A stretch of DNA of 64,000 nucleotides, taken from assembly GCA_047495785.1 (NCBI GenBank), contig JBLDXI010000015.1, forward strand, positions 5,084,001 through 5,148,000, written 5' to 3'. Shown piece by piece: positions 3,001 through 58,900 of this stretch. The notes beneath the pieces are model-generated. The model made no database searches, was not told the origin of the DNA, and worked only from the letters and a program-made list of their open reading frames with translations. The stretch comes from Lepidodermella squamata. Lineage: Eukaryota; Animalia; Gastrotricha. How positions within the stretch are numbered: the first letter of the stretch is position 1; each line of letters begins with the position of its first letter. A program made the position numbers and the translations under genes.

Positions 3001-5096
3001 TTGTGGGTCAGACTTAGTAACATGCGAATCGACGGCCAAACAACCGAATCCATGTGAGGAATTGCCAGCAAGAGCCCCGTGTTTTCAAGAAGCTGCCTGC
3101 AACATATAATCAAGTTATAAATGATCAGACCTATGAATATCTTTTCGACTTACTTGGCAAATGAAGAACTTTGGCTGCGAGGTCTATTAGCAACAGGCTG
3201 AGGCGGTATGAAAGAATCATTGCCGAGTTGGGAAGCAGGTTTCGGACAGTAGCGCAAAATCAGCTCTAAATGGAGACTAGACGGCTTATTATCGGCGGCT
3301 GATAATAACGACTCCGTATGATTGGTAATATCGAAAATCTTCTGAACGACATCTTGTCGCTCAGCTGTAACCATGTCACTCTGAAACGCTGCGATACATT
3401 TCTCAACCTCGTCCCAAGCGAGCGAACTGTTGCTCAGCAGGCGCTTGGACTGGTAGAAAACATGGGCCAGAATTACGGCAGCTTGTACGCCCAAGCACTC
3501 AACCTCGGCTAGATGCGGATCCGCCTGGATAATGCCAGCTTTCAACGTAGGTTTCGTGCCTCGAAGAGCGTAATGAAGGCAAGACATCGAAAACGTAATC
3601 AAAGCACTGACTAGTTGAGCCTCGATGAACGCGGAAAGAATCAGAGCAACTAGCGTGGAAACCGGGTCAGGAGGTGGTGCTATATAGGCGAAACGTTGCG
3701 AAAATTGAAAATAAAGCAACTCCTCAGCTTCCGCGGCAACAAATCCTTCGGTTATCGACCAACCTTCCTCAAATTTTCTAGGATCCGTGCTGAGTATAGC
3801 CTTTGGTATTTCCGTCGTCCACTCAGGTGTTTGAATGTTGAAAATAGCGGCGAGCAACGCTAACAGTTCCCGCTGGCGTTTGATACGCTTCTGGGAGACG
3901 CGGCTTGTTATGAAATAACCGCTATTGTCAGCGCCTGGTTCGAATCCCATAGGAGGAGCAAGGCCGTTTAATAATTCACGGCAATAATTGCCGCCACCCA
4001 AAAGCGCAAATGCCCCGGGGACTGAGTGAATGATTTTCATGAGTGTGAATCTCGCAGCCTGCCATTGAAATGTTGGCGTTTTATCTTCACCCTGATTCGG
4101 ATGCGGTTGAGGAATATCGGGAGAGACAGTGTCATCTGAAAATCGAGCTATGAGCAATTCCAAACAGCCACTTGAATAGACTGCACGTCGCGTGTGAGGA
4201 AAATTCAGCAAATGAACGAAAACCCCGGCGATTGCTTCGTTAACAGACATATAGAAAGTTTCCGATAAAGCAACTGTCATCAAAGCGTGTAACATAGGCG
4301 GAGTTGGAAGGTCAGGCGCCACGCTCGAAGCTAAACACGCCTCTGAGATGATTTCGGCAGTCAATTTTCGGGGAATAACAGTTTGATGCTTCGGAGACTT
4401 GCTTTGATTTTGCTGCCAGGCAGTTGCATTTCCCTCATTTAATATGGCAGCGCAACACGATGAAACTATCACACCAAAAAAATCCGAAACATCTTTGGTT
4501 GGGCAATGAAGAACAGCTAGTCTATACAGCTTCGAAACCAATCGAATGGTTTGAAAATAATCAGAATTTGATTGCGCAGCAGTATCCAAGCATCTGAAAC
4601 AACATTTTGTAAAATAATTTTATACCGGTTTTTTAGTTTCTAAGCACCTTGCGATTGGTATATTAGTGTTCAAACGAAATAGTATTGCCAATTCACGCGG
4701 AGATGAAACCACAAGGCGGATAGCTCTAGCCGAAGCAGCGCGAAGTGAAGTGGAATTTGATAGCAGACCAAGATGGAACCCTTGCAAAACACGCTGCTCG
4801 AACTGATTTTCAGAGATTGTCGCAGCATCTCGGGAAACACCACGTTGAGGAGCAATGCTTTTCGCAAGGGCATTCAACGTTTCCACGTTTTTACGCACAT
4901 CAGCTGGAGTCGCATTACTTGAGTAACAACTCGATATGCCATTCAAAAATCTTTCAACTAAAGTTGCAGTGCTCTCCTCGACGAAATCCTCACGCAAAAA
5001 GCTATTGCCCCGATCCCTTTGATAACCTTGAAAACAACATAAAACTCAGATCATTGATTTCCGAATCAACCGTTTCTTACCCCTGCGAGTGTTCAT
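1..5096 (-). CDS. RICTOR: Rapamycin-insensitive companion of mTOR (mTORC2 subunit), multi-exon, 3' end runs off the window
   Basis: Spliced ORFs 4620-4997, 3150-4589, 2685-3113, 192-2345 carry RICTOR-like motifs LRAASARAIRLVV..IARCL, WSITEGFVAAEAEELL, HNSSQCLICC and CLYSEVVALMAKLALPRLSRLFVHTLF. ATG at 5096 in a short first exon (MNTRRG|gtaaga). The last visible exon ends CAG|GT at the window edge. Confidence 0.88.
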
Positions 5097-49755: not shown

Positions 49756-51401
49756 ATGCCGAGAATCGTGGCAGTAACAAGAAGTAACGGATCGCCCGGT
49801 GCGAGCAATAAAGGATTGGCTGCTGCGGTGCTGAAACAGCAAGCTGCCAAGAATCATGCTTCGAACGAACCAAAAATATATCTACAGAGCCTTAATTCAT
49901 TGCTCACTTGCCCACTTTGTACTGGCTATCTTATTAACGCCCATACTCTGACCGAATGCAGCCATACTTGTAAGTCTTTCGATATTGGCCTATTCGGCAT
50001 TATTTTTATTTTACGCTGTTGCAGTTTGCAAGTCATGCCTCTTCGCATATTGCCGAAAAATGCTGAAAGACCAACCGCTGGCGTGTCCAATTTGCCAGAC
50101 CACTCAAAATCTATTTGTGACGAAAAAGTGGGATGGATGCAAGCCAGACCATGTTCTGCAAAGCTTGGTCTATAAATTGGTGCCTGGTTTGTTGCAGAGA
50201 GAAATGCAACGAAGACGTGATTTCATCGAAAAACAGCGCCAGTCGCTTGGAGCGAGTGAAAACGGCGGTCCTCAGAACTGCGCGTCGAAGAGCATTTCAA
50301 TTTCATTGGAATTCGCTGACAGGTACCTCGCAGCTGCCTGCCGCTCAGAATCTCCCATAACGCCTAATGTATATTCATCTTAATTTAAAGCAGGAGCGTT
50401 TTTGATTTTGTTCTATTTTTCCCACAGACTTCCATTTTGAACGAATCAGTTGCATCTGGGGTCGATCCGATGGCAGCGGCATCGGCTCGGTTTGGTCGAA
50501 TCTTCCTACGATGTCCACCTCAAATGACCATATTTCAGCTCAAGAAGTTTATTACCGTGCGATTTTCACTCAGCCTTACTAGTGATGTAAGCTATAATAT
50601 ACTTGAATCAGTGTTATTAATTATGACTTCTGATTCCTTTTTTAGATAAACGTGATGGCTTCGGCTGAGGAGGAGTATATGCAAGACAGTCTTTCACTCG
50701 GCGACGTTGCGTTTTTAATGAATTACTGCGAAGAAGTAAGTGTATGAAGAGATAAATTTATAAATTTATTCGATCAATATTTATGATAGCCACTGCTATT
50801 TTGCATGTTTCGATTTTCGGAATTCAGCCGAGATTGTTTCAGGATTAAGTAACTAATGCCCTGTACTTTGTTTCAGCGTGCTCCTCTTCGCTTGTTTTTT
50901 TCAATAACGGAATATTTGGTGCAGCCCAGGCGCAAAACTCGAAACTCTTCCGGCGGACGCCAGTCACCTCTTGCTCAAGCAGGCAGCAGCAGTTCTCCGG
51001 CTAGACGCCGGCCTCGACTTGTTGTTGTCGAAAAAGAGGCAAGCTCGGAAAGCACCGACGACGCAGAGGAAGAGGACGAAAATGGATCTGCGCCCAGCTC
51101 TGAGATGGACGACGAAGGCTCCGTGGAGGGCGCACGCGATCGCTCGGCTGCCGAATTGACGGAAACTCCAGATAAAGCCGCCAACAACAAACCCTCGCCC
51201 AGTTCATCATCGAGTGCTTCCTCGGCGCTGCTCGCCTCCTTCCAAACCAGTTGCCCTGACCCTGACCGGCCAAAATTGGTGTTACGGCGCGTTTCGACCC
51301 CTCTCGACCCGCCGCCAATGAGTCAGCCAGCGGTCGACGACCGGCCCGCCTCGCCTGTCGCCGATGCGCCACCTGAGGCTTCCGAGGCGGTGAATACTTG
51401 A
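49756..51401 (+). CDS. Polycomb group RING finger protein (PCGF/BMI1/Psc-like)
   Basis: [54 protein letters not shown], RAWUL-like FLRCPPQMTIFQLKKFI and PLRLFFSI. Confidence 0.9.
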
Positions 51402-52250
51402 TCATATAATATTGTATTGTAACACATCAAAACGTGAATAATGCAAGTAACATTCTCATCTCGATTTTATAAATCATTAAATGCGCCTTGGACTGCAAGA
51501 AAATTGATTGTACCATTGGATGTCTAGAAATGAATATATAAAAATATATCCGTAAAAATTAATATATGCGCCATGCGATTATTCACGTCCATATTTTGGT
51601 TATAGTAGTCTTGTTGTTTTTGGAAGGCCTTTCTGGTTCTTGCTAAAATTCTGTCGATCGCGCTTCAAGTGCGTGGCTTTGTCTAATGATATTTCCTTGT
51701 TTTGACTCGGGTCGAAATTCTGTTCGAAATTATTACATATGGGCTTATTATTACAATTATTCCATGTTGTGTTGCCGTCATTCGTTTCGAAATACATCGT
51801 ATATATACGCATCCGAGTTTTGAGCGTAATTGCTTTATTATCATTATTATCATGTTCATCAAATTGGTTTTGGGTCAGTAGCGACACGGCGTTTTCGAAG
51901 TTTCCCGCTGTTGACAAGGCCATCTGCCTTGTGTAGTATGTATTAAGAGGCCGCGAGTTCCTTCATCATCATCATCTCAGGAGAGAGCGAAAAAATAATG
52001 CTATTGCTATTATTACTATTGCAACTATTGTTGTTATATCAAAACAAAGGAGCGCTCAATCCGAATAACAAGAAATCGGACAGCATTTGTAGCAACATAA
52101 TATCATGATGATTAGAGCACACACAGACAATGTGGACGTAAATAAAACTGCGAGACCTGATAAAACAATCGGGCTATTGATACACCGGCAATTGACGACG
52201 AGAGACAGACGTATAGAAGAAGTGCGCACAAATCGGCATCACGTCTCACT

Positions 52251-55200
52251 CTAGCTGTCGGGGTCTTCACCGGGCACGGCCTGGCAGTCCAGCACAGCTT
52301 TTACAAAAACATCTATGGAGGCTGGCAGGCGCGCGTCGGCGCTCTTTTTGCGCTGCTGCGCATCGTTAAGGTGGATCAGGCCGGCCACAGCACAGGTGTG
52401 AATTAGAGCCTCAAATGTTGACAATATGCTAGAGTTGACGGTAAACACCAGACAGAAAGTAAGCGACAAGGGCACGGCGTACAAGTGTGGCCAGCCGTCA
52501 GAGGCCGGCGCGAGCCACGGCGATGACAAATAGGCGCGGCCGAGCGGGATGCTGAGCGCGCACAGGGCCAGCATCAAAACATACGTGAAGCACGACACCG
52601 TCCAGATGAAGTGCAACAACCGATGTGTGATTATCCGCTTGTCTCGCAGCGCCTTCTCGGCATCAACCGCACCGTTATCCTATTTTACAGAATTACGAAG
52701 GGGCTAAAAATTGATTCTACGCAAAAATCTATACACGACAAACCTGTTCGAAACTGATCACAGGTTCGGGAGGACCCTTAAGCTTGGCTTCCTGGACCAG
52801 CCTTTCGAAAGATACCTTATCAATACTGAGATTATCCTCCTCGGCTCGCATTGCTTCGAGCTGCTTTCTCAACCGCTGAGTCTGTAAGCGTGTAGCAGCA
52901 ATCATCGCATCTTGCTCCGCCACTTGACGTTTCATATCTGATAATTTTTCATAAAGACCGCAACAGATTACAAATAATAAAATGGTATAAATTATACCTA
53001 GATCTTCTGTGCGAAGTTTTTCAAGCTCGGCGCTAAAGTAACAAAAAAATATTATAGTGCAAGGAATAATGCGAAACGTTTGATTGGCTTACGTGAGGCC
53101 GTCCACTTCTGTTAGCAGCGGCTTGATGCGATTTCTTTCGAGAGCGAATGCGGTAAGAGCATCCAACTGAAAATGAGAAAACAACGATTATGATGAATCC
53201 CATTGAAGCAAATTGGTTTTTTACCCAACGATACAGTAAAGCACACGTTTTTGATGCATGATTGACTTTTTCATAGCTGAACTGCGGTTTCGAAAAGAAT
53301 TTTTCTCGAATTTGGCGGCACTGTTCTACGCTGACTGTCTCGGCATCAAGGCGGAACAATGACGGCAAAAACGAATCCTTGACGATGAATACGCGCAGCT
53401 TTTCCCAATCACCCTTGGCATCCTTTTCACCGGCCAGACTCGCCACAGCCTCAATTGTCATCTTCACAGCATCAGGCGGGTTGGTCATTTTCTTCAGCTC
53501 GAAGACGCGCTGTTTATCAAGAGAGTCCTTCATCTCACGCTTCGACTTCTCGAAGTCGGCTAGAAGCGTATTCAGCAGGTAACGAACTTGCGATTGCTTC
53601 TCAGAAAGGCTCTTCTCTTTGAGCGCTGCCATGTCGCGAATGACCTTTAATTGCGTCTTCTTCTCTCGCTGCTGTTCTTCCAGTCGCTGTAGTTCGAGAA
53701 TCTTACGCTCCAGCTCTTGAATTTTGCCCTGGACGTCCTGCAACTGTTTCTCAGTTCGCTGCAGCTTCTCGTGACTTTCGTCGACGGCCGAACAGATCGA
53801 GTATCGGACGCTCTGCGAGCTGGTCGCCGTGATCACCGAGTAATTACTGACACTCTCCGTATCATCGCACTGAATATTTCTGTCGCTGAGCTGTTCGAAT
53901 ATGCTGCGAGCGCGAGAAAATCCCATTGAGCCGTAATAAGTAGCCACGCTGAGGACAGCCTCTGACAACTGACTACCGCCACAGCAACCACAGCAGCACG
54001 CACCGAACGTGGAACAAGAGAAGCCGATCAGACGGCCCATTCGGCTGAATAGTCGCAAAGCTCCATGGAAAGCGACGCCGAAGAAGCCGGCGTTGAAGCA
54101 AGAACGTGAATCGCACGCGTGCTCGCGGTAAGATACCTGCTGCGATTGCTGGAAGTTGAACGCGAAAAACTGGTGCCAAATATGAGCGGCTGTGCTCAAA
54201 TAATGTTGAGCGACAATTGCTTCACCTATTATAAGCCATAGGATGGTCCAAAGGGCGATCAAAATGATCGCTAGAACTTGAAATCCGTAACTGGCATCAC
54301 CGTTTGAGAACAAGCCTATTGATAAATATTCATCTACAACAATAATAATGTTGCAAAGTTATAAACAATGTGCTTGAAAGAACACGTTACCGAGAAATAC
54401 AGCTATGTAGTAACCCAGGAATAGCATGAATAACTGGAACACGACAAGAGCCTAGAAAAGAAGAATAAAAATAAAACTTGACTTCCATGTCATATTCGAA
54501 CCAAGCTATTGATGAACGTGAAGACTTGCAGTTTCGCCAGCGTACTCCGACTGACTAAAAGATGAATTTTGATAGCTTCAAAGATCTCTGAACATCCCGC
54601 AAACGATTTGAGGACGGCAGCCCAAATGAAGAAAGCTGCTGGAGTCTATTGGAAATAAATAACCTATTAGCTGCCGGAAGATACCACAAGGCAAAACTAA
54701 CGATGATAAAAGCGACAACGGCAATCAAACCCCACGTTGCAACTGTGTCGACAGCAATGAACATCGGAGGAATATTGGGCAAGGTTTTCGTGACATTTTC
54801 GACTATTCGGTTCCGACCGCTCACATTGAAAGCAGTCGAGTTGATATTGCGCTGAATTCCGTTGGGAGTCGAATTCTCAAAAAATCCCAAAACTGCAAGT
54901 GAAGCGATAGCACCAGCTTACAATGAAGAACACGTTCGTAAGTCATTTCGCAAAGGCTTGGAGCAAAATTATTTTACCGAAAATTAAAGCCACGAATACA
55001 GTCCAAAGACCCCAATGGGCCCTTCGACAATGAAGAAGAATCGCCAGTACCAAATTAGCGATAACTAATTAGAAAAATTAGAATTTTGATGCGTGTGTTC
55101 AAGAATTATTACCAGTCACTGTTAGGATGGCTATTATCACGACACCGATGTACCAATAGTTGACAAGAAGGGTGACCTGCCTTGGCGTCATAACCGCCGC

Positions 55201-55968
55201 CATCCATTTTAAGCCCTGTGAGACGTTAAGATTCGTTTGTCCAATGCAAACGCCGTACATTTGACTGAAACTGTCCAGTGATCCAGAAAATATATAATGG
55301 CTATTTATGGCTTGAAGCTTGAACTCACGAATTGGAAGGTGCCGAGCTGTTTGCTGGTCTCGAAAAACAGCTCGTGGATACCCTTCCGCTCGAATTAGAC
55401 GACGTGCAAAACCAGCCGGCTTTGGGCGGGCAGTTATCGACGCATGACTTGGTGTACGTCCCAGTTGGAGAGAACGATAAGAGCATGTACCTAATAATAT
55501 TTAGCCCCCATAAATAGCGTTACACTTGGTTGCGAAGAAGCCCACCTTGACCACGTTAAATCGACCTGTGAAGTTACGGTTTTCGAAAATTGCGATAATG
55601 CTTTGCCACGATTTCCGCAAACAAAGCCATGGTCGTCGATTCCCACAAGTAACGCATTCAAATCGCCAATGAATATCGTCGCGATGCCAATAGTTAACTA
55701 TTGAAATGTATGATGATGTGAGTGGGGATTTCTATGAAGAGAAGGTTAAATTATAACAATTATTACTTACCGCCAAAACTAGAACAACTCCAAAGGCCGA
55801 AAAACAAGTAACATCGCCAATTTTGCTGTCTGGATTTTCAAGGTCCTTGCTCCCGAGTTTGCTGAGTGCTTCATCGCTGCTCGACTTGGAACAGGCAATG
55901 CTGGAGGGTGAGCGCTTGAGTAGGGGAAAGTCCTCCTTCAATTGCTGTTGTTTACACCAAAAAATCAT
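52251..55968 (-). CDS. SLC44/choline transporter-like protein with an internal dynein heavy-chain stalk and microtubule-binding domain
   Basis: CTL motifs in order: GDVTCFSAF, GDLNALLVGIDDHGFVCGN, CVDNCP, CCCGCC..ATYYGSMGFSRARSIFEQLSDRNI, and the final two TMs ending STFEALIHT. The dynein-like segment (about 52770-53775) is in frame across GT-AG introns. Confidence 0.82.
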
Positions 55969-56601
55969 ATTGGCTTTGGTTTAGACTAAATTGCGTTCTT
56001 ACTGAATTGTTATTTATCATAATGTGTCTTTCGGCTATTTATGATCGGTTTATTGCGATGAGAACGCCGGGACACATTGTCCGCGACGTTGTTGCTGACA
56101 AAAAGAATTAAAAATCTACGTTTGACACATGCTGACGAGAAGAAAACAATTTTATAGCCATCGACAATGCAGCGCGGTGATAGCTCATTAGCAATGACAA
56201 AATAATTTTTGCCCGCAGACTGCACCACATGGTAAGTACTGCGCATGATAGCAAAGCATTAGGCGCATCCAGCAACTACGCCTGCAGCTGAATAATCGTA
56301 CGCGAACCCGCGCTCTCTAATATATTGTAGCATACCGACCTGCGTTATCATCCGTGAGATCCGTGACAAAGAAACATGTTAGCCCAAGTCGATCATCACT
56401 AAGCGTGTGAATCTTTGTGCGAACATCGCGTTTTTTAAGCGGTTTTTTACCAGCGCACGAACATCTGCGTCTATCCTCATCGATTTTTCGCCGTAAAATA
56501 AAGCGGTAGTAACTAGCGGTAGTAACTAGCTTACTAGCGCCGCAACAGCGCTAGTAAGCAAGAGTTAAAGTGTGCTTCGAACGCCGGTGAGTCACATTTT
56601 C

Positions 56602-56627: not shown

Positions 56628-57732
56628 ACCTTTTCAATCAATTAAAACCCTGCCGGTTGCAAATCATAATTCTAGGATTGACCAATGACCAATGGCGCTT
56701 CGTGTAAATGCTCGCAAAATGACTGAAAATGGCTCATCATCGAGTGAAAATCAGATGTTAAGGTTGTTCAAAGTTACAGTAGTAATACTGGTTCTTGAAA
56801 TAATCGTTTGTTTCAATGCAAAGCATATAACAGAAATCCGCCCGCCTTCAGACGAATCTTGACGAATCTTTTACAGTTAAAAATAAATGAGCGGCATGGA
56901 TCCTACGAGATTGCCTAAACATGGACGGGAGGCTAATCTTTGTTGACAATATCGCGAATGTATCGAAATACACCTTACGATCTCGTGAACTCTTCCAAGA
57001 GAATTTCAAATGACATATTTCGATCAGTATGAATACCGCTTTAAATCGCCTAAATAGCGCTAACACCTGCATATGATATTTTATATTGTTGCATAAGTGA
57101 CACGTTACATGTTGTGGCTAAGTGATCGCGCCGAGAGCGTCATAAAAGATAAAATCAGAATACGATGCAACTAAACAAAAGCGTGTTTTCAATTAGCGTT
57201 GGTTATAGTTCAGATGTTCTGATTTCGTATTTAAAAAGGTAAGGCAAATTCTCATTAGCATAAAAGCAAGTTCGTACGCAAAACTTGCGCTGAGTTCGAG
57301 TAGCAGCTGCGACTATTTGTTTCGAGTTATTTCTGTCATCAAAATTAATGACCCATCAAGAACGCATTGATGGCATCTTTAATGGTTTCTCAAGGAATAA
57401 TTTTCTGAGAAAGAATCGGGCGTTCGTACTCTTGGAACAGCAGAACGCAGGTGCAAGTATGTAAATCTCTCTTCTCGACAAATAACCAGCAACCAAGCAG
57501 ATAAAATATTATTTGAAATACTTAAGATTAACAAGTGATCAACCTTCAACGCGAAAGGCCATGACTCGAGAAAATTTTGTATTATACGAAAATTTTATTA
57601 CTTTTTTCAATTAGATTTGCTATCAGCGGTAGACAATTGAAAATGACGAGTGGTACGAACTTGACCACAAGTTTGATAAGAAAGAAACTGTATCACGAGT
57701 CAGCAAATATTGCAGCATTCCAATTATTTATG

Positions 57733-58900
57733 TCACTTCTTTTGGGCGATGAGCACAGCAGATGGAGACAAGCCGAGGTCGGCCAGACTTCGTTCCATGT
57801 CTTCTTCCGAATAAACTTTCCGTCCCTGAAACGGGCACATGAGTTGAATGGCTGTTGGATCGGAACCCATGGCAGGTTCTTTTACTAGAACGAGACATCT
57901 CACGGCGGCCAGCGGTTCTGAGCTCTTGAAAACTTGGGAAAACTGTCCCCCAGAGGCAAATCGAATCTGCAGAGATTGCATTTAAGAAAAACAGAGCGAA
58001 ATAGAGAAAATATTTCTTGCCTGTAGCCTAGCTTCTGCAGCGTTGGATTTGACGGGCTGAGCAGCAGGGGCTGGGACGGTTTCAGGAACAGGAGCTGCTG
58101 CTGCTCCGTTTTTCTCACGCTCCAGACGAGCTTTGCGATCAGCTTTATCGCGCTCGATCTGCTCCAAAATGCGCTGTTTTGCCAAGGCGTCCTCACGCTT
58201 TTCTCGCTTTTTATCTTCTTGAGCCTTTTTAATCTCAGTCTCGAGCATTTGCTGCTTGATATTGCTCAGGTTCTTCGCAGCGGCACGGCGCTGAATCCTA
58301 AATAATAGGAAATAATTAGCAAATATCCTAATGCCAAAAGAATATGTAATTAATGCCGGCGAGTGCGATGTTATGTTTTTACATATGTGTGCTTAGTGTC
58401 GCAGTGATAGGTATATACTGTCTTCCTATCTATTTGGGATTGAACGAATCGGATCGGAAAACTCACTCTCGCTCTCGTTCAGACTCTTCTTCCTCTTGTA
58501 GTCGCTTCGTTCGGCGTTCGACTAGTAGCTGTTGGATACGATCGGCTTGCTGTTTCTTCTCCTCGGCAGAAAGCGGTTTTATTTCCTCAGTACATTCGGC
58601 AAAATTTTCATGTTGCGTCTTTAAACCGTGCAACTCAGCAGCCGCAATGCTCTTAAACAGTTTACCGCAGTCTTCACACTTGAGAGACTTGGCGGCACCT
58701 CCTTCTTCCATTACCGTATCATTGTCGTAGTCGTCTACTTCGGCCTTCTTATCAGTGGCATTCGAATCGCCGTTCTTCCTTTCAAGAGCCCAGTTTATAG
58801 CAGCTTCCAAATTGTTGGAGGTGGCAGAGAGGGCCGATTTCGAGACATCCTCCGAGAACCCCATTTGCACCATGAAGCTTACACTCTCCGCGTCAGCCAT
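57733..58900 (-). CDS. UBXN1: UBX domain protein 1 (UBA, C2H2 zinc finger, coiled coil, UBX)
   Basis: MVQMGFSE..ALSATSNNLEAAINW, CEDCGKLFKSIAAAELHGLKTQH, RILEQIERDKADRK, LADLGLSPSAVLI. Confidence 0.88.

Follow-up and report, generated by a model that had tools for sequence, protein, structure and literature searches.

Structure of the locus and transcript support

In the 64,000-nucleotide stretch of the gastrotrich Lepidodermella squamata genome analysed here (contig JBLDXI010000015.1, positions 5,084,001 to 5,148,000; hereafter "the window", in whose own numbering all positions are given), a minus-strand gene extending from 56020 to 52251 encodes a multi-pass membrane protein that, as judged from its sequence, carries in frame a complete dynein stalk, that is, an outward coiled coil (CC1), a microtubule-binding domain (MTBD) and a return coiled coil (CC2). 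The gene comprises 14 exons and 1,003 codons plus a stop, its spliced model is free of internal stop codons, and it is single-copy in its 121-Mb genome. It came to attention through an initial annotation of this DNA, which had pointed to an open reading frame (ORF) at 53033-54313 on the minus strand. This ORF exists and reads "..CCCGCCGG..ATYYGSMGFSRARSIFEQLSDRNI", then a coiled coil, then "KMTNPPDAVKMTIEAV..DWEKLR..ASKTCALLYRW"; in other words, hydrophobic segments and a Cys-rich stretch "GACCCGCCGGSQLSEAVLSVATYYGSMGFSRARSIFEQLSDRNI" run into a heptad-rich helix and from there into "LDKQRVFELKKMTNPPDAVKMTIEAVASLAGEKDAKGDWEKLRVFIVKDSF..FSYEKVNHASKTCALLYRW".

Two public sequencing runs contain the stretch, one consisting of cDNA contigs (X1) and one of genomic DNA filed under another organism label (X2). 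The X2 DNA independently spans the region with about 0.4% differences from the window. A 5,046-nt X1 contig is placed on window positions 52000 to about 55629 with 11 segments cut out, each of them GT..AG on the minus strand (52680-52743, 52938-52997, 53033-53092, 53167-53224, 54334-54390, 54452-54501, 54646-54701, 54917-54977, 55065-55112, 55271-55328 and 55491-55545), and since introns are precisely removed in its contigs, we take X1 to be cDNA. The long contig extends from exon 3 to past the stop codon, in frame through the dynein-like insert and into the last two membrane helices; it removes exactly the intron at 53167-53224 that the annotation had proposed, together with the three introns downstream of it. 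In a second, small X1 contig, 55945-56002 (intron 1) is removed and 56003 is joined to 55944, so that 12 of the 13 introns are spliced out in cDNA. The thirteenth, at 55698-55770, is inferred from an intron position shared with the orthologue described below and from homology to choline transporter-like proteins (CTLs) across the junction. The likely start codon is the ATG at 56020-56018, with an in-frame TAA upstream at 56041-56039; the ATG at 55968, where the annotation had let the gene begin, falls within intron 1. The frame ends at a stop codon at 52251-52253, after resuming the last two membrane helices as "RIITHRLLHFIWTV..STFEALIHT", as had been read from the DNA.

Central to the argument is one exon (54333-53225), which encodes the membrane part as well as CC1 and the MTBD with no stop between them, and after which the same transcript proceeds in frame through three small exons to the final two membrane helices. 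Since membrane part and stalk meet within one exon, and X2 covers the region as well, a mis-assembly is not a realistic explanation; the single exon and the single cDNA contig, which keeps the insert in frame, likewise rule out two separate genes.

Two details of the transcript are recorded here for completeness. At 55264-55272 (minus strand), two in-frame splice acceptors lie 6 nt apart, one after ..GGACAG and one after the following TTTCAG; the cDNA contig takes the first, and use of the second would lose two residues. At its other end, the X1 contig goes on for about 2 kb past position 52000 (window 49950-52250), that is, about 2.3 kb beyond the stop codon, and this extension represents either a long 3' untranslated region or overlap with the transcript of a convergent neighbour (ORF 50856-51401, plus strand).

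A cytoplasmic dynein-1-type stalk within a membrane protein

The likeness of the inserted segment to the MTBD of cytoplasmic dynein-1, which had been proposed from the motif pattern, was borne out by profile and structure comparisons. The Pfam model of the dynein stalk and MTBD (PF12777) scores the single-exon ORF at 31.4 bits, above its cut-off of 24; this match has E = 1.3e-7 and spans positions 9-205 of the 344 in the profile. When residues 560-760 were compared with the Protein Data Bank (PDB) using phmmer, the best match was the mouse dynein-1 stalk (5AYH, E = 3.8e-19); mouse, human, yeast and Dictyostelium dynein-1 gave E values from 3.8e-19 to 2e-12, the best axonemal dynein gave 1.5e-8, dynein-2 was absent from the list of matches, and every significant match (E < about 0.03) was a dynein. 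Judged by these alignments, the insert resembles cytoplasmic dynein-1 most closely. The spliced insert (residues 541-880) is collinear, over its positions 32-294 and about 260 residues, with full-length dynein heavy chains (best E = 2.5e-30), in an alignment that takes in CC1, the MTBD and 75 or more residues of CC2 and ends at insert position 294, which is residue 834 of the protein.

On these grounds we assign to the insert the parts of a complete stalk of the cytoplasmic dynein-1 type, with an outward CC1 of about 97 residues, a six-helix MTBD and a return CC2 of about 85-95 residues. CC1 is placed at 53522-53812 (residues ~565-661) by the phmmer alignment to dynein-1 stalk structures and by structure prediction of the orthologous piece; the MTBD, with helices H1-H6, is placed at 53225-53521 (residues 662-760) by PF12777, the PDB matches and Foldseek, and ends at the exon border after ..LLYRW; and CC2 is placed at 52792-53166 (residues 761-845) by the splice joints and the dynein alignment, across exons 11, 12 and 13 with introns 53033-53092 and 52938-52997 (all on the minus strand). 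In the phmmer alignment, CC1 lacks exactly seven residues, or one heptad, relative to mouse dynein-1 (window 53700-53760, minus strand). The placement of gaps in CC2 varies between alignments, so that the two helices may or may not be in register.

The predicted structure is in agreement with this assignment. An AlphaFold2 (AF2) model of the orthologous CC1 and MTBD, computed with a 47-row dynein alignment, reached a mean pLDDT (the predicted score in the local distance difference test) of 95.2 and consists of one 98-residue helix (pLDDT >90), the six short helices H1-H6 and the start of a return helix. In a Foldseek search its top matches were 3ERR, 5AYH and 6RZB (template-modelling score 0.82 by target), a fold match that is partly circular because the model was made with a dynein alignment, and the identity to dynein-1 MTBDs is 29-32%. 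The rest of CC2, folded as a separate chain against CC1 and the MTBD, gave a docking score of 0.45 (best control 0.16), with runs agreeing in at least 76% of contacts and a partner pLDDT of at least 74. This is weak support. At 0.60 or under, the mark was attained by 5 of the 78 solved complexes and by each of the 4 mismatches that got through, and by such counts a result of this kind is more often wrong than right unless the pairing is likely beforehand.

No match to an AAA or dynein heavy chain family was found with Pfam in any of the exon-sized pieces of the gene that were tested, nor was a dynein linker or tail detected, and the insert is flanked on both sides by membrane helices within one transcript. 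Hence the reading of an antiparallel stalk placed in frame in a multi-pass membrane protein without AAA modules, put forward in the annotation, agrees with the cDNA, its splicing and the Pfam results. A mis-annotated dynein fragment is ruled out by the lack of AAA modules in these pieces and by the membrane helices on either side. The genome's own dynein-1 heavy chain, encoded on a different contig (E = 1e-236 to human DYNC1H1), is only 39% identical to the insert in the MTBD, which rules out a recent duplication of the host's dynein stalk and argues that the fusion is old rather than a recent copy.

Microtubule-facing residues

We mapped residues of functional interest from the phmmer PDB alignment ourselves, using human numbering 3212-3395 (mouse equals human minus 2); as a check on the offset, mouse R3382, E3378, E3289, K3298 and K3299 fall on the correct residue types. 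The NPP motif, the equivalents of K3299 (Lys) and E3378 (Glu), the CC2 proline and the Trp at the end of the dynein-1 H6 motif "..GPMVKW" are kept in both the window protein and its orthologue. K3299 is adjacent to D427 of beta-tubulin in dynein-1 (PMC6629372). Of the two residues proposed as tubulin contacts in that motor (PMC4987762), the first, K3298, is replaced by Asp in both species, and the second, R3382, by His in the window protein, while the orthologue keeps Arg. The CC1 proline, P3285 in the mouse, is replaced by Ala in the window protein and by Thr in the orthologue. By these residues the MTBD module looks competent but is not identical to that of dynein-1.

A divergent CTL-like membrane domain

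The membrane part had been annotated as a choline transporter of the SLC44/CTL type, and a PF04515 domain split by PF12777 had been expected. While PF12777 matches, PF04515 does not: at E ≤10 it finds no piece of the window protein or of the orthologue, and a six-frame PF04515 search of the genome recovered three ordinary CTL loci and not the gene studied here. On the tests run, the protein does not qualify as a member of Pfam PF04515. Three further searches were negative as well, since a phmmer comparison of the membrane pieces with the PDB did not find CTL1, a database search with the membrane part of the long exon gave no candidate at E ≤10, and a language-model (Atlas feature) search with the middle and C-terminal pieces found nothing. 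Atlas models of the membrane pieces, for which two sequences only were available, were poor (pLDDT 0.49-0.62).

The kinship emerged from comparison with the animal's own CTLs, of which the genome holds at least five ordinary genes at three loci (L010-L012; contigs C26, C54 and C74), two of these loci being tandem pairs and all of them well detected by PF04515. We built approximate proteins of five canonical own-genome paralogues and compared their profile with a two-species profile of the new family. At the N-terminus (residues 5-136), which includes the N-tail, the first membrane helix (M1) and the ectodomain motifs GD..L..G.D..GFVCG and CVDNCP, hhalign gave a probability of 94.8% (E = 5.4e-8). 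A hidden Markov model of the five paralogues gave E = 4.7e-9 for residues 45-141 and 2e-6 for the orthologue, with E = 6 for reversed controls; tblastn gave E = 1.6e-4 for the N-terminal signature, and 83 of the 100 Atlas clusters nearest to the N-terminal piece carry PF04515. With the insert removed, a global hhalign comparison was collinear from end to end (96.7%, E = 4.3e-10; reversed control, E = 0.009). For the C-terminal half alone the global comparison collapsed to one column, for which reason we used the local score against shuffled sequences; this match is weak (E = 0.016 over 62 columns) and beats all 60 block-shuffled controls. The last exon has only one other match genome-wide, which is to a canonical CTL M9 exon (E = 0.46). 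It appears, then, that the first 130 residues are clearly CTL-like and carry most of the kinship, the remainder being collinear but weak, so that the relationship is looser than the annotation had assumed. Overall, we consider it quite probable that the whole membrane domain is a very divergent relative of the CTL/SLC44/Pns1 proteins.

Along the minus strand, the coding part of exon 1 (MINNNS, 56003-56020) is supported by the cDNA join between 56003 and 55944 and by the upstream TAA. Exon 2 (55771-55944) encodes the putative cytoplasmic N-tail and the first half of the first transmembrane helix (TM), as indicated by its splice joint, hydropathy and the hhalign match to canonical CTLs. Exons 3-9 (54391-55697) are assigned, from splice joints, hydropathy and N-x-S/T sites, to a Cys-rich ectodomain rich in N-glycosylation sites (GD..L..G.D..GFVCG .. 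CVDNCP), followed by TM2-TM5. The first part of exon 10 (53885-54333, residues 391-540) holds TM6, a weakly hydrophobic M7/M8 region and "CCCGCCGG..EAVLSVATYYGSMGFSRARSIFEQLSDRNI", which hydropathy and hhalign align to M8 and the third amphipathic helix (AH3) of CTLs. Linker 1, defined by alignment with the orthologue, follows at 53813-53884 (residues 541-564) and contains a conserved S.YSVI..S.QS motif. On the far side of the stalk, linker 2 (52623-52791, residues 846-880) includes a Pro-rich "GPPEP" and the intron 52680-52743, as seen from the splice joint and the orthologue alignment. The last two TMs (M9 and M10), a predicted cytoplasmic C-tail and the stop lie at 52251-52622 (residues 881-1003), on the evidence of hydropathy and of a weak collinear match to CTL M9/M10.

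Two features of exon 10 deserve a separate remark. The CCCGCC run that had been singled out in the annotation is not kept in the orthologue, which has KLCRGGRSG there. The stretch "GGSQLSEAVLSVATYYGSMGFSRA" (window 53900-54010, minus strand; residues ~500-537) matched BurrH (PDB 4CJ9) at E = 1.2e-11 as a sum over 14 repeats of 33 residues; no single stretch was significant, and we regard this match as chance.

Insertion point and topology

In the global hhalign comparison, the insertion point falls between canonical "..KAFSLIASNSVR" and "LVILDSISS..", where the helix that follows the conserved NAY..G.NFC.SA motif has ended and the next TM has yet to begin. The structures of human CTL1 and yeast Pns1, solved by cryo-electron microscopy and crystallography, have ten TMs with an extracellular domain between M1 and M2, and three amphipathic helices that lie parallel to the membrane and link M4 to M5, M6 to M7 and M8 to M9, the last of these being AH3 (PMC13160678). 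Because the ectodomain is outside, these three links are cytoplasmic. In the window protein, hydropathy indicates six strong TMs, then the M7/M8 region of weak hydrophobicity and, beyond the insert, two more TMs; N-x-S/T sites are concentrated in the loops M1-M2 and M3-M4. The solved CTL1/Pns1 topology, applied by homology, and the occurrence of N-glycosylation sites in alternate loops both argue for a cytoplasmic insert, and the even number of helices needed after the insert agrees with this placement. Most probably, then, the stalk leaves the cytoplasmic face between AH3 and M9, in line with the annotation, which had placed the insert in a cytoplasmic loop before the last two TMs.

Orthologue, synteny and selection

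Among 5.8 billion clustered proteins and 1.84 billion representatives, the sole protein matching both halves of the long exon was P0001, with 46-47% identity and E = 1e-101; taken alone, the P0001 piece has no Pfam match at E ≤0.01. P0001 lies on a 6.1-kb metagenome contig (L009), and a 9.7-kb contig from a different sample (L013) is 99.3% identical to it. The search for relatives that the annotation had called for thus yielded an orthologue of the same architecture at 46% identity. A scan of the Joint Genome Institute metagenomes with the alignment of the two sequences found no further relative, and a search with the C-terminal alignment returned only the orthologue's own species. Assembled with three introns, all of them at positions common to the window gene, the L009 gene encodes at least 968 residues, with its parts in the same order as in the window protein. 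In both species a UBX-domain gene lies upstream in the same orientation; in the window it was located by tblastx of L013 at 57727-58840 (minus strand; 53-70% identity), and PF00789 is recorded on the UBX gene of L009/L013.

Conservation between the two species is uneven along the protein. The MTBD is its best-conserved part (63% identity), followed by CC1 (49%), CC2 (48%) and M9-M10 (45%), with 31-40% in the other membrane parts and 27-35% in the linkers; the signature STFEA..HTCAVAGL is kept in the orthologue. The coding differences between the window and the two public runs X1 and X2 are synonymous in 12 of 15 cases, and the polymorphisms within the stalk and MTBD are so without exception (8 of 8, seven of them in the MTBD). 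From this pattern the MTBD is evidently the most constrained part of the gene, and we conclude that the gene is a working one because it has an orthologue of the same architecture and shows purifying selection centred on the MTBD.

Proposed function and competing explanations

Based on the predicted architecture, we propose a motor-less tether, by which the protein would hold its membrane against microtubules, a reading to which we assign a probability of about 0.6. In this model, the antiparallel coiled coil of about 97 residues, roughly 15 nm long, would project from the cytoplasmic face of a ten-TM protein and offer at the tip of its hairpin a dynein-type MTBD capable of binding the tubulin lattice. 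In this way it would link a membrane, be it the plasma membrane, an organelle or a vesicle, to microtubules without generating force. We expect such a tether to be mostly passive, with an affinity set by the stalk's own registry; the linkers of 25-35 residues, poorly conserved and in one case Pro-rich, favour passive tethering over tight allosteric coupling.

Several observations weigh against this interpretation. Microtubule binding by the insert is a candidate function, and the replacement of K3298 by Asp in both species, of R3382 by His in the window protein and of the CC1 proline by Ala or Thr means that the affinity could be altered. The C-terminal CTL fold, and hence the cytoplasmic placement of the stalk, is only weakly indicated by collinear matches and hydropathy, and to this must be added the silence of PF04515 and of the language-model search, as well as the partial circularity of the fold match mentioned above. 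The gene was found in just two species among billions of database proteins, and the X1 record merely guesses that its material is RNA. Finally, L013 lacks 37 nt within M9 relative to L009 (L013:6600-6625 against L009:5400-5450), which breaks the frame and yields two ORFs of 117 and 85 residues in place of one of 223; this deletion may reflect either an error of assembly or a broken allele.

Some of these points would also fit other explanations. It is conceivable that the stalk and MTBD fold was kept while microtubule binding was lost, the hairpin now serving as a rigid spacer, as a means of oligomerisation or as a docking site for some other partner. The two altered contact positions (PMC4987762) and the 29-32% identity to dynein-1 MTBDs are compatible with such a loss, and other motor-less proteins with 2-6 tandem MTBD copies indicate that the module is reused in other contexts. 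A spacer role, however, would not demand that the MTBD rather than the coiled coil be the most conserved part, nor that the synonymous polymorphisms concentrate there; in addition, the K3299 equivalent, NPP, E3378, the CC2 proline and the Trp ending H6 are all kept, and R3382 is kept in the orthologue, so that we consider this explanation unlikely. Much less credible is an artefact, in which the assembly would be wrong, the transcript would be a chimera of two genes, or the gene would be a pseudogene in decay. In favour of this, the record of X1 does not state that it is RNA, the X1 contig continues for 2 kb beyond the 3' end of the gene, and the orthologous contig L013 carries the frame-breaking deletion. 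Against this, one exon spans the junction between membrane part and stalk not only in the window but also in the cDNA, the independent DNA run and a second species, the ORF is intact across 1,003 codons and 13 introns, the polymorphisms are overwhelmingly synonymous, and intron positions and synteny are common to the orthologue, which together make an artefact very improbable.

A regulated or two-way coupled device would retain binding and add control to it. Here, movements of the CTL bowl (M8/AH3 against M9) would drive the stalk helices to slide between registries, so that either a ligand or lipid state sets microtubule attachment or the pull of a microtubule alters the membrane domain, as in a mechanosensor. 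It is suggestive that the whole stalk was captured and not the MTBD alone, with both coiled coils conserved (CC1 49%, CC2 48%), that CC1 and CC2 are joined to two different, adjacent elements of the membrane domain (PMC13160678), that linker 1 contains a conserved motif, and that control of affinity by registry is established for dynein (PMC7042235; 3ERR, 3J1T, 3J1U). Yet a half-heptad shift would be dissipated by linkers of such length and poor conservation (27-35% identity), one of them Pro-rich, CC1 no longer has the proline by which the hinge is marked in dynein, and there is no demonstrated conformational cycle of CTLs, the structure paper doubting any transport (PMC13160678); we therefore regard coupling as rather improbable. 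More doubtful again is its most specific form, a natural transducer in which half-heptad sliding of CC1 and CC2 is wired to AH3 and M9 and in which a lipid or ligand in the bowl switches attachment, or tension is read out. If it were true, it would provide the first mechanistic read-out for the CTL proteins, whose transport role is now doubted.

Relation to known systems

Both of the domains combined here were already known, and integral-membrane microtubule linkers are an already known kind of protein. Chimeras of seryl-tRNA synthetase and the MTBD fold and bind microtubules without a motor. CLIMP-63, REEP1, p180 and STIM1 with EB1 are integral-membrane microtubule linkers that rely on short segments, basic or disordered, or on motifs that bind EB1. 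The new protein resembles this latter group in being membrane-anchored with a microtubule-binding element directed toward the cytoplasm, and by analogy it probably works in the same manner; it differs from them in that the element would be a folded MTBD of the dynein type, held on a coiled coil of 15 nm, and there is no sequence relation. With the engineered synthetase chimeras (3ERR, 3J1T, 3J1U) it shares an MTBD and stalk grafted on an unrelated protein that holds both helices. The chimeras were made in the laboratory and have part of the stalk, a fixed registry and a soluble base, whereas here a natural gene is predicted to combine a whole stalk with flexible linkers and a membrane base.

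Compared with the stalk of cytoplasmic dynein-1 itself (DYNC1H1; 5AYH, 3WUQ, 3ERR, 6RZB), the insert has collinear CC1, six-helix MTBD and CC2 and about the same stalk length. In contrast to dynein-1, it was not found to have an AAA+ ring, a linker, a buttress or a tail, the identity is about 30-39%, and the stalk base joins membrane helices in place of AAA4 and AAA5. The membrane part, in turn, has in common with CTLs (CTL1/SLC44A1, 7WWB and 9QU3; Pns1, 9F63; PF04515) the cytoplasmic N-tail, M1 and a Cys-rich glycosylated ectodomain with the motifs GD..L..G.D..G..CG and C..CP, about ten hydrophobic segments in the same order, and a Cys-rich stretch followed by A.(L/I)..(V/I)A...G..F..(A/S)R..F at the place of CTL M8/AH3. 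It departs from them in the silence of the Pfam model, in an identity of about 17-24% to own-genome CTLs (hhalign), and in the 340-residue insert between AH3 and M9.

Dynein stalk and MTBD modules outside a heavy chain also occur in a set of motor-less proteins from metagenomes and public assemblies (P0002, P0003, P0051 and P0012) and in a transcript of Gefionella okellyi (P0049). These are 405-937 residues long and contain 2-6 tandem MTBD/stalk copies and no AAA modules; P0003 has an additional CFAP97/Hemingway domain, and those other than P0049 are unnamed or named just "hypothetical protein". Unlike the window protein, they look soluble, repeat the module, and none of them has the CTL-like membrane part.

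Biological implications

Full-text literature searches combining CTL, dynein stalk or MTBD and transmembrane terms returned no description of this or a similar architecture, in keeping with what the annotation had supposed. To our knowledge, this is the first natural protein with a dynein stalk and MTBD as a module outside the motor and inside a membrane protein. The literature that we found describes the stalk and MTBD only as part of the motor, and its behaviour without a ring by way of engineered chimeras. It now appears that evolution made such a chimera, set it in a membrane protein and maintained it by selection in two species or more, which would make the dynein stalk a portable module; together with the tandem-MTBD proteins, this suggests that the dynein module has been reused outside motors more than once.

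For the cell biology of membranes and microtubules, the protein would add a structurally defined type of linker with a fixed, predicted reach of about 15 nm. It would also offer a natural test of the stand-alone stalk and MTBD, in terms of its default registry, of its affinity and of how it competes with motors for the site on tubulin. For the CTL family, whose choline transport is questioned by the structural study (PMC13160678), it may provide a handle on function.

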